Notes under the pieces: model-generated
Database searches by the model: none
What the model saw: only the letters and a program-made list of their open reading frames with translations
What the model was told of the DNA's origin: nothing
Translations under genes and position numbers: made by a program
Shown here: in pieces, positions 24,931 to 28,863 of the stretch
Numbering within the stretch: the stretch's first letter is position 1
Layout: each line of letters starts with the position of its first letter
Assembly (NCBI GenBank): GCA_038496445.1
Contig: JALMLS010000237.1
Location: 39,304 to 103,303, forward strand
Direction of reading: 5' to 3'
Length of the DNA stretch: 64,000 nt
Source: Trichosphaerium sp. ATCC 40318
Taxonomy: Eukaryota; Protista; Tubulinea

Positions 24931-25566
24931 TTAACTATTATTCTCCGTGCTTTTATTAACGTCCAGGTCCACTGTAATAATCGCATCCTCTTTACCCTGT
25001 GCGAGAGTAGATATACACAAACTATCATCCATTTCAACATAAGTTTTCAAGAGGATTTGCTTGGTCGTTGGCAAGTTTAGTTTGTTTTCGATGATTTCTT
25101 TAATGTCGCCAAAAGTTTTGCTACCTTCAACCTCAATGGTTAGTTCCTGTCCGTTTAAAAACGCTCCCACTATATCACCATTACGTGGTACACTTACAAC
25201 CACTTGGACGCGCTCTACAATATCCTCTTTGGCAGTGACAGATGTATCAAATGGCTTTGCCTCTTCATCAGAATTTTTTTTTGTGATAACTGGTGATCTT
25301 TCTCCTTGCGTTGCTCTGTAATCTCTATACCATTTCGTTATTTCTGTAGTTGTATGTCCTTGTGGTTTGTAGTAGTCTATCCATCCTCTTAGCTCTTCTT
25401 TATTGTGGTGTACAGGTATGGTTTCTTCTTTTTTTTGCCGTTTGGTTTCAGTTGGTTGCGTGTAGGTGCTTCGTTTACGTTTTTTCTTGGTTGACAGAGG
25501 ATATAATGGTTTATCCATTAACGCCCAGTTCACTCCCGACCATTGCGGTCTTGGTATAGATGTCAT
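24931..25566 (-). CDS. Intronless protein with an NLS-like basic patch and a C-terminal ubiquitin-like domain
   Basis: KKKRKR; LTIEVEGSKTFGDIKEIIENKLNLPTTKQILL..MDD is Ubl-like. Confidence 0.7.
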   Translation of the reverse strand: MTSIPRPQWSGVNWALMDKPLYPLSTKKKRKRSTYTQPTETKRQKKEETIPVHHNKEELRGWIDYYKPQGHTTTEITKWYRDYRATQGERSPVITKKNSDEEAKPFDTSVTAKEDIVERVQVVVSVPRNGDIVGAFLNGQELTIEVEGSKTFGDIKEIIENKLNLPTTKQILLKTYVEMDDSLCISTLAQGKEDAIITVDLDVNKSTENNS

Positions 25567-25814
25567 GTTAAGCAAAAAGGCAAAGAAACCGCTATAGAAA
25601 ACTCAACATTTTTCAACAATTCTACCAGGATGACCATACAGAGTACTGTTATTAAGTGAGGTGCCGTAAGTTTCGTGGCAGATGTCCAAAATCTCAGGTA
25701 AATCTTTGGATTACCGGTCACCTGCCACGAAATTCACGGGTGTAACTTTACCATCTGGATAGAAATACACCAAAACAATACAGTTAGTACTTTGTTTATT
25801 TTCATTGTAGTCCA

Positions 25815-27264
25815 CTATTCACTGAGTAACAACGCTACACAAGAAGGCAATATATCAATTAGCCTAAATTTAATTGTCTGCCATTCTAGTGCAGTGACAA
25901 ACGCGAATGCCTCCCTTCTAGATTTGAATACAATTTTTAAATCTAAGTTAAAAATACTGACAACCGTTGATTTTACTTTTGGTATCGTTATCCCATTCAC
26001 CTTTCTCAAATTAACTTTCATGAATGGAACACAATTGTTGGCCTAAAGAATATCATAAGCATACCGGACACGTTAATGTACATTGGTTCAAAAGACTATA
26101 CTTTTGTAATGGTCAAGAAACCGCCTTGAACAGAAATACCTAAGTTGTAGTTAGATCAATTGTTCTATTTTACAGTAACTTGCGTAAGGGAGAGTGCCAA
26201 TGAAGTATAGATCTCCAAACGCATTTTGTTCTTGCAAGTCCGTTATACGTGAAATGAGGAGAATAAAGGAGCAAAGGGTGCGCAACAGCGGATTGAAATT
26301 GACATTTTAAATAGTCTCTATATAGCACTTAACACAATTTGATAAAGCAGTTGCTACAACGTACTCTGAGAAACCTTTGGCTAGCGCTGATGTTGTATAA
26401 GCAAAACGGTCGTGGGTCATAGAAGCAGTCCTGAAATTGAAATTATGCACTTACACTGTAAGAACGTAATGAGGCGTACCCACTTTGAACAATTAGGCGG
26501 TAGCAAAAAGACATTATATCCTTAGCGTTTCTAGTTATATTCTTATTTTGTTTCAGGTATTCTTCAGCAAATTCTCGGAGCATCCTCATGTCTATATTGA
26601 TATATTTACCAGGTAGTTTAACAAAACATAACACAGCCCAACTATCGATTAATAAAACAAAATTAAGTCACTGACGAGCCTCAAGCAATGTGGTATTGTG
26701 TGGTTTCCAAACTTAAAGTGCTTCAAGAACATACGGAAAAGTTCAATCTTGTAAGAAAAGAATTCACCTAAACAATCAGAATGTCAAAAAAGATGCAAAG
26801 AATACACTACGCGAAAGAAACAACAGATCACGTGCCTAAAAGTCTGCAATTTAAAGAAACCAAATTATGTACAATACATGATGCTATGCTTTCATTCGTA
26901 TCAACGACGCCTTCATCAACGAACAGGCTGTCAAAAAAAAAGTCAAACGACATTGAAAAAACGATTGTCACAACAAACACGTGCTAACTTACTTCATTGC
27001 ACTGAACGGTGAAGTAGCAAATAGTCTATTGAACGATGACATCCTCTTGAACTTTATTTTCCACGTGTCTTTGGAAGAGAGTGACGGCGTTTTTGATATT
27101 TTGAAATGACGGATTGCTAAGTTCTTCCAAAGACAATCACAGCTCAATAACGATTGTATTCTTCTGTTTGTTGCTGAAAGTGATAATAGAGTGAAAGCAC
27201 TAAGGTATTGAGCTAATTCATACAGTATATCATCAGGAAGATGAGCTGTTGCGTCTGTTTGCAT
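25815..27264 (-). CDS. F-box + divergent Sec7 + PH-like domain protein, multi-exon
   Basis: F-box LPDDILYELAQYL..LSATNRR..DCLWK; Sec7-like FATSPFSAM.LFVDEGVVDTNESIASC..LLG|EFF..FLKHFKF..IPHCLR..VKLPGKYINIDMRMLREFAEEYLKQN; PH-like KVNLRKV..FKSRREAFAFVTALEW. Confidence 0.72.
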
Positions 27265-27359: not shown

Positions 27360-28863
27360 TTATTTGTTTTCCTCGCTGTACTTCTTTGTCATGAGTTCAT
27401 CAAGCAATTTAAAGTACTGTTTTCGATACACTTGCATAGGTCTATACCGCACAATGTACTGATTTATAGCGGTGTCCCAAGCATCAATATCCTTCAACAT
27501 TTCTTTTTCTGTTGGAAGCTCACACTCTCCTGCTAGTAATGAAGCGAACCACTCACTCTGTTTCTCAGCTACAGGATGCAAAGAACCATCTGTAGTAGGT
27601 AGTGCTATAAAAGCAATGTTTCTTAAGTTTGGAGGGAACACAAACTTATACAACGAAACTCTGCTTGGTTCTTCTCTAATTTCTACAGTTCCATCTTCAA
27701 GAAAAGGAAAATTATACTAAAAATGTTGTCAGTTGTTAGGTACAAATGTCATTAATTAAACCTCGTTACCTTAAAGCCCCAACACCATATGATTGCATCT
27801 ATTTTAGCATTTGTTCCATCTTCAAAGAAGACGGTGCCAGAACTTAACTTTGTAATTTTTCCTTTTCGATTGTCATCATTACTTTTATCTTCAGGCTTTA
27901 CTCTCCCTAGTAGCTGTGCTATAACACTAGGCTTTTCTACTTTCTTAGACACGTGGCTATAAAACTTATGTTTAGTTGACTTAGTACTAAGCTAGTTTAC
28001 ATACCGTCTTGAAGAACCAACTGTAAAAGATGCTACTTTGCTCACCTCGGAAAACATTTCAGATCCGCTTATTCCTAAACCAGATACAAGAACACGTTTT
28101 CCTTTAAATAATTTAGGGTATCTGTATTTATGACTGTGTATCTGTAATCCTGTTTTATAGAGCTTTAGTAAAACGCACAATGAACGTGAAGTACCTTTAA
28201 AGCTTGACAAGCCAGGAATTTGTTTTTCAGTCGGCCATATCTCATCCCAATGGTGACCTAATATGTTAACCCTGACACCACTTTAAGTGATCTGTACCAT
28301 TACAAACTGCTACAGCATGAACTGTATGAGTTTTAGAAACGCCATTCGAAACTGTAGTAACCGCCCAAGTGTCACTAAACAAGTAAGACTCTATATTACA
28401 TTATTTCTTTTGTTTTTCCAGTAGTTTTCGTACTTTGTGTTGTGCTTGCACGTGACAACCTCGTGTTTAAACTTTATATATTGTAGCAGATTAAACGTTT
28501 TACAATAGTCTTCGAGATATGTTAACACTTGTTGATGACTAAATACGAGTAAGATAACGTATGCGAAAATGTAAGATTGAAAAGGATTCTGGTGGCTCGT
28601 GAGTACCTCGGAAAGTCGTAATAACTCTCTGGCATAGGTAAATCACTATATTGCGTGTTATTGCGATAGGTGTTAGTCGTTAATGACGCATAGCACGAGT
28701 GTACAGAAGTATCACTGTTAAAACGCCATAAACCGCCTATATTATCCGTTTTCTCAAAGACAAGAGGCTCTAGGCATTTGTCCGCCAGCTTCTTAGCACA
28801 TACAATTCCAGCAGGTCCAGCACCAATGACAGCTATAATTCTCTTGCTTTTAGGCTCCGCCAT
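27360..28863 (-). CDS. Flavin-containing monooxygenase (class B FMO), multi-exon
   Basis: IAVIGAGPAG (FAD), GGLWRF, FKG.QIHSHKY (FMO motif), RVLVSGLGISG (NADPH), DAIIWCWGF. Confidence 0.92.

Follow-up and report, generated by a model that had tools for sequence, protein, structure and literature searches.

The window analysed here, a stretch of 64,000 nucleotides from Trichosphaerium sp. ATCC 40318, carries on its minus strand, between positions 27264 and 25815, a locus in which an F-box seems to have been joined to a Sec7 domain whose catalytic glutamate is replaced by lysine. This raises the question whether the locus represents an intact gene and, if so, what a Sec7 domain of this kind could contribute to an F-box protein. 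Sec7 domains are recognized by motif 1 (F-R-L-P-G-E), which holds the invariant glutamic finger, and by motif 2 (I-M-L-N-T-D-x-H-N) in helix H. The invariance of the glutamate is documented, and reversal of its charge renders the domain inactive (PMC6724607).

The host genome (70 Mb, 642 contigs) is compact and intron-rich, with introns of 40–110 nt, and the window has a G+C content of about 37%. The gene is bounded by an ATG at 27264 and a stop codon that ends at 25815, and all coordinates given for it below refer to the minus strand. Downstream of the first exon, the sequence consists of short open segments in shifting frames, separated by gaps of 38–68 nt that start with GT or GC and end with AG. 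Joining these segments by hand, and then by script, yielded a model with eight exons and seven introns of 38–68 nt that encodes 359 amino acids and contains no internal stop, instead of the three joined fragments that had been proposed in a preliminary description of this DNA. A variant genetic code was rejected, since all stops are accounted for by ordinary short introns. Family scans, homology searches, and fold and complex predictions were all run exon by exon, and the spliced 359-residue model was used for the frame check and for alignment to the model of a paralog. Regarding the surroundings of the gene, exons of an FMO-like flavin monooxygenase were found on the same strand at 27360–28210 (PF00743, 42.6 and 36.9 bits). 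The stop codon of this FMO-like gene is located about 95 nt upstream of the ATG of the F-box gene, which leaves scant space for a 3' end and a promoter. On the other side, about 240 nt downstream of the stop codon of the F-box gene, a minus-strand frame of 214 residues (24931–25575) has a weak match to the ubiquitin family (PF00240, 20.8 bits, below the cut-off).

The eight-exon model rests on sequence comparison with the paralog. This second copy came to light on contig C55 when exon 1 served as the query in a six-frame search of the host genome (43% identity, E = 4e-15), and a Sec7 match of 52 bits lies immediately downstream of it. We modelled the paralog at C55:181180–179775 on the minus strand, with six exons that all have GT donors and together encode 367 residues. 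It has the same order of F-box, Sec7 domain and C-terminal domain as the window gene, and five intron positions, including their phases, are common to the two genes. Exons 1, 2 and 4 are equal in length in both paralogs (272, 92 and 162 nt, respectively). When aligned end to end with a local script, the two protein models are 33.7% identical over 362 residues (E = 5e-53). Because exon lengths and phases have stayed intact at an identity of only 34%, the duplication must be old. The closest Sec7 relative of paralog exon 4 in the genome (48% identity) is an ankyrin-repeat/Sec7/PH gene of the ARCC/SecG type, which is located on the minus strand of this contig at a distance of about 50 kb (C55:127097–130615). 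Of the two genes that make up this family in the genome, the window gene evolves faster.

The splice donors of the window gene stand out, as the presence of three GC donors among seven introns is unusual. Four introns have GT donors, namely intron 1 (GTAAGT), intron 4 (GTACGC at 26479, homologous to a donor position of the paralog), intron 5 (GTACGT; 47 nt, absent from the paralog) and intron 7 (GTATAG). The preliminary description had counted two GC-AG introns, to which one has to be added: intron 2 (26768–26835, 68 nt, donor GCACGTG), intron 3 (26642–26679, 38 nt, weak donor GCTCGT) and intron 6 (26140–26183, 44 nt, donor GCAAGT). In position and phase, introns 2 and 6 equal the paralog introns with the donors GTAACG and GTACGA, respectively, and intron 3, in phase 2, appears to be homologous to the paralog intron with the donor GTACGT. 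Every GT or GC donor and AG acceptor located at most 45 nt from each junction was enumerated. For intron 2 the GT alternatives lose 14–19 residues, the sole in-frame GT alternative for intron 3 costs 11 residues, and for intron 6 no GT alternative was found among the donors enumerated within 45 nt. If intron 3 were retained, a stop would be encountered after exon 3. Splice models with only GT donors were rejected, since none of them retains the residues that are homologous to the paralog, and since introns 3 and 6 have no suitable GT donor. Also rejected was an earlier reading that placed the donor of intron 4 at a GTAAGT near 26456, as the frame closes only with GTACGC at 26479. Each of the three GC donors coincides with a GT donor in the paralog, which fits T-to-C changes at position +2 of the donor and not arbitrary decay. 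A T-to-C change at this position is the one change known to stay spliceable.

Exon 1 (26993–27264, 272 nt), which is open from the ATG onwards, encodes the start of the protein, the F-box, and a DTWK-containing linker to the first Sec7 helices. It is 43–44% identical to its equally long counterpart in the paralog. The F-box motif (residues 7–51; 27112–27246) is matched by the Pfam models PF12937 (E = 1.4e-8, 34.8 bits, cut-off 24.3) and PF00646 (25.3 bits, cut-off 20.5), so that the F-box named in the preliminary description scores over the Pfam cut-off with both. Its score is higher in the window gene than in the paralog (34.8 versus 27.1 bits). A complex prediction that combined F-box residues 1–62 with only the C-terminal exon of the genome's Skp1 gave a value of 0.24 against a mark of 0.34, and counts neither for nor against an interaction. 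In the genome, two Skp1-like loci with identical scores (C88:17040–17308 and C430:17197–17465) probably represent a duplicated or allelic segment, and further Skp1 genes are present on C137 and C57. The DTWK linker found in both F-box/Sec7 genes was also encountered in a single-exon F-box protein of 249 residues (C22:481054–481803, plus strand), which has a Cys-rich, zinc-finger-like C-terminal part in place of Sec7. This gene suggests that different domains have been attached to the F-box module in this genome.

Exon 2 (26836–26927, 92 nt) of the window gene encodes the N-terminal portion of Sec7 (LFVDEGVVDT...) and has the length and phase of paralog exon 2, with which it aligns. Exon 3 (26680–26767, 88 nt) encodes the middle helices and aligns, with equal phases, with the 91-nt exon 3 of the paralog. 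It is followed by exon 4 (26480–26641, 162 nt, as in the paralog), which comprises motif 1 (LPGK...), helix H and a truncated motif 2, and by exon 5 (26365–26430, 66 nt), of which the product (SMTHDRF...) represents the C-terminal part of Sec7 and is aligned to the beginning of exon 5 in the paralog (SMTLDQF). Within exon 4 the motif VKLPGKYINIDMR is present, which reads LPGK where Sec7 domains read LPGE. A codon check placed the lysine codon, AAA, at 26607–26605, exactly where it had been reported previously, and this codon is one transition away from GAA. The lysine is located opposite the glutamate of LPGE in the PDB alignments with RalF and BIG2, and opposite that of FPGE in the pairwise alignment with the paralog; the proposal that it occupies the position of the glutamic finger thus stands. 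Taken alone, exon 4 is a borderline Pfam Sec7 match (21.6 bits, profile positions 91–134, just below the 22-bit cut-off), and Sec7 domains account for 11 of the 12 PDB matches that it has at E<=10. Exon 5 of the window gene has no Pfam Sec7 match at E<=10. In the paralog, the Sec7 domain is clear: exon 4 scores 45 bits (E = 1.2e-11), reads FPGE in motif 1 and has Gea2, RalF, Sec7p and ARNO as PDB matches (best E = 1.6e-7), and exon 5 adds 14.5 bits at profile positions 140–182, colinear with the exon 4 match. Colinearity with this paralog, together with the F-box and the exon 4 matches, upholds the combination of F-box and Sec7 that had been described for the window gene.

The lysine is not the only deviation from a canonical Sec7 domain. 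In motif 1 of the window gene, one extra residue is present between PG and ID, and motif 2 shows a gap of seven residues where the paralog reads LIMLNVDKH. The paralog retains both the glutamic finger (FPGE) and motif 2 (IMLNVDKH). PGE was found in all nine other Sec7 motif-1 exons that were read in the genome (the loci are on C76, C55 (two), C262, C35, C10, C23, C36, C78 and C54), the window gene being the sole exception found. In comparisons with three canonical Sec7 exons from this genome, scores of 45, 53 and 31 were obtained for the window exon, and of 99, 70 and 68 for the paralog exon. The fact that the F-box score has been kept while the Sec7 core scores about half as high as that of the paralog looks like a domain-selective change rather than uniform decay. 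The picture suggested by these comparisons is that the window gene has selectively lost the catalytic signature and retained the part for SCF docking. Considering the lost glutamate together with the extra residue in motif 1 and the deletion in motif 2, the encoded protein most likely does not function as an exchange factor. In the course of this survey we also observed three near-identical frames of 44 residues (C247:20390–20500, C247:2595–2699 and C434:5375–5482) with weak Sec7 matches (profile positions 101–137, 17–19 bits). These frames end in HLPS where canonical Sec7 domains have MLNTD, similar exons are present on C36 and C78, and the frames may belong to a diverged Sec7 subfamily that is repeated in the genome, or to a segment that was duplicated.

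The remaining exons encode the C-terminal part of the protein. Exon 6 (26184–26317, 134 nt), aligned with the paralog, covers the end of Sec7 and the start of the C-terminal domain; exon 7 (26102–26139, 38 nt) maintains the reading frame from exon 6 to exon 8 and can be aligned with the stretch VIVTHKRVQIT of the paralog; and exon 8, including the stop codon, extends over 25815–26042. In both paralogs about 105 residues follow the Sec7 domain, and these end in the common motif ALEWQ..K..L.DILPSC (E = 1.3e-4 for the last exon alone). The preliminary description regarded this part as a PH domain, which our analyses did not confirm. At E<=10, the Pfam PH models matched none of the C-terminal exons of either paralog, and these exons were not assigned to any Pfam family. 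As a control, the three PH exon pieces of the ankyrin-Sec7-PH gene on C55 did match PF00169, with 27.8, 17.1 and 15.5 bits. In a protein-language-model Atlas, the last exon of the paralog was nearest to PH-family clusters at 0.82, a sub-threshold value rated as a lead only, and nothing was retrieved for the last exon of the window gene. The AF2 model of the paralog's last exon has four strands and then a long helix, an arrangement that would fit the second half of a PH fold, yet with a pLDDT of 43.7 the model is unreliable; a Foldseek search with it produced no match at E<=0.001 and is meaningless as a test. The C-terminal part of the two proteins is therefore best described as a conserved domain that is possibly PH-like.

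Relatives of this family were also sought outside the genome. An HMMER profile of both exon-1 sequences found no match at E<=1e-10 among 1.84 billion representative proteins, including no self-hit; as this representative library does not contain the organism's own proteins, the absence is weak evidence with respect to close relatives. The 15 matches of the profile at E<=1e-3 that were inspected were generic F-box proteins (LRR, ApaG) or low-complexity proteins, none of them with a Sec7 domain. Two metagenome scans, with the exon-1 and the last-exon alignments, returned no match, so that per-exon queries of the representative proteins and metagenomes yielded no ortholog outside this genome. In a survey of Arf GEFs across eukaryotes, the combination of F-box and Sec7 was found in animals only, and no other mixed architectures were reported (PMC6727740). 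The tables of Sec7 proteins in Dictyostelia likewise list no member with an F-box (PMC2826412).

The animal protein in question, FBX8 or FBXO8, resembles the window gene product in that its F-box is N-terminal to Sec7. It is reported to be specific to metazoa, derived from IQSEC7, present as a single copy and devoid of a C-terminal domain (PMC6727740). The family described here differs from it by its presence in a protist genome, by its two paralogs, and by the approximately 105 conserved residues that follow Sec7 in both of them, where members of the FBX8 subfamily have no domain. In vitro, no exchange of nucleotides by FBX8 is reported to occur (PMC6724607), and FBXO8 has been linked to ubiquitination of ARF6 (PMC6724607, PMC6727740). 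With the cytohesin/ARCC class, of which Dictyostelium SecG is an example, the family shares a C-terminal domain after Sec7 at the position of PH. Members of that class have a coiled coil or ankyrin repeats where the window family has the F-box; moreover, the C-terminal domain of the window family has no match to PH models and, unlike the members of this class, the window copy has neither the glutamic finger nor motif 2. The residue change itself is identical, and at the same aligned position, to that in the E156K variant of ARNO (cytohesin-2), a protein in wide use as an inactive or dominant-negative variant. ARNO E156K is catalytically inactive (PMC6724607). It was engineered in a domain that is otherwise intact, whereas the change in the window gene is natural and accompanied by the insertion in motif 1 and the deletion in motif 2. 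The kinship with a local ankyrin-Sec7-PH gene, the reuse of the DTWK F-box, the restriction of FBX8 to metazoa and the lack of F-box/Sec7 matches elsewhere together favour the view that an F-box module was fused locally to a cytohesin-class Sec7 gene, independently of FBXO8. An origin separate from FBXO8, as put forward in the preliminary description, is thus plausible, since FBX8 is a metazoan derivative of IQSEC7 and the paralog's Sec7 is nearest to the local gene. The architecture is probably a convergent variant of the FBXO8-type layout.

We consider it best to read the locus as an apparently intact gene of eight exons that combines an F-box with a cytohesin-class Sec7 domain without the catalytic signature, and that serves as an SCF receptor convergent with FBXO8, although we would put the chances of this reading at about even. 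Such a protein would dock to Skp1 and SCF via its well-kept F-box. It would not catalyse the release of GDP, as Sec7 domains become inactive when the charge of this glutamate is reversed, and the Sec7-derived module would act as a binding surface and nothing more, in analogy to FBXO8 most likely for a GTPase of the Arf family. The outcome would be a ligase receptor analogous to animal FBXO8 that was reached by convergence. The end-to-end homology with the paralog, the F-box score well over the cut-off and the lysine aligned to the catalytic glutamate speak for this explanation; the three GC donors among seven, the weak donor of intron 3, the Sec7 exon score just under the Pfam cut-off and the lack of orthologs in the searches speak against it. 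The same splice donors lend weight to the main rival, namely that the locus is a decaying or poorly expressed duplicate, either a young unprocessed pseudogene or a gene with weak donors, in which the lysine is just one of many changes under relaxed constraint. The presence of three GC donors in one gene, with GCTCGT being weak, the degenerate catalytic motifs and the missing self-hit in the protein library would all fit with this. Nevertheless, we regard such decay as unlikely in view of 359 codons in eight exons without a stop or frameshift, the preserved exon lengths and phases relative to a paralog of only 34% identity, which imply an old duplication, an F-box that outscores that of the paralog, and GC donors that all differ by T-to-C at +2 only.

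If the gene is intact, the lysine could do more than abolish exchange. It could stabilize an abortive complex of Sec7 with Arf-GDP at membranes, and the F-box could pass the Arf thus trapped to SCF for ubiquitination, so that the protein would be an evolved Arf-GDP trap. The change is the classic charge reversal of ARNO E156K (PMC6724607), the F-box is intact, and FBXO8 and ARF6 provide a precedent (PMC6727740). However, such a trap requires a preserved Arf groove, a PH domain for membrane targeting, and expression. The altered motif 2 and motif 1 spacing and the strongly diverged core make it doubtful that the Arf-binding groove has survived, and the PH domain needed at the membrane is unconfirmed, for which reasons we find this proposal improbable. 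We are somewhat more hesitant still about its extended form, in which a dedicated Arf-GDP trap feeds SCF beside an exchange-capable sister with the glutamate, and the pair shows the FBXO8 principle invented independently for a second time, outside animals. For the trap, the losses beyond the glutamate (motif 1, motif 2 and about half of the Sec7 score) mean that retained binding of Arf has to be assumed. Alternatively, the Sec7 fold may have been repurposed and no longer bind Arf, the protein having another substrate or acting as a regulator or decoy of the glutamate-bearing paralog. The F-box and the C-terminal motif evolve more slowly than the Sec7 core, and the C22 F-box gene with the DTWK linker has a Cys-rich domain instead of Sec7, so that more than one kind of substrate domain has been attached to this F-box module. 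Since nothing positive points to another ligand, and the overall helix pattern is still colinear with that of the paralog, we deem repurposing the least probable of these possibilities, and quite unlikely.

Returning to the F-box/Sec7 protein as a ligase receptor, a second independent family of this kind in a protist would show that linking a module for Arf recognition to SCF is a solution that recurs, and would also back the contested view that FBXO8-type proteins are ligase receptors and not exchange factors. Should the window protein indeed be an Arf-GDP trap, evolution would have fixed the very charge reversal by which Sec7/Arf-GDP complexes are frozen in biochemical work, and would have coupled it to an F-box. 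The paralog pair, with the glutamic finger in one member and lysine in the other, constitutes a natural experiment, and a comparison of the two proteins could distinguish the binding of Arf from its activation in vivo.
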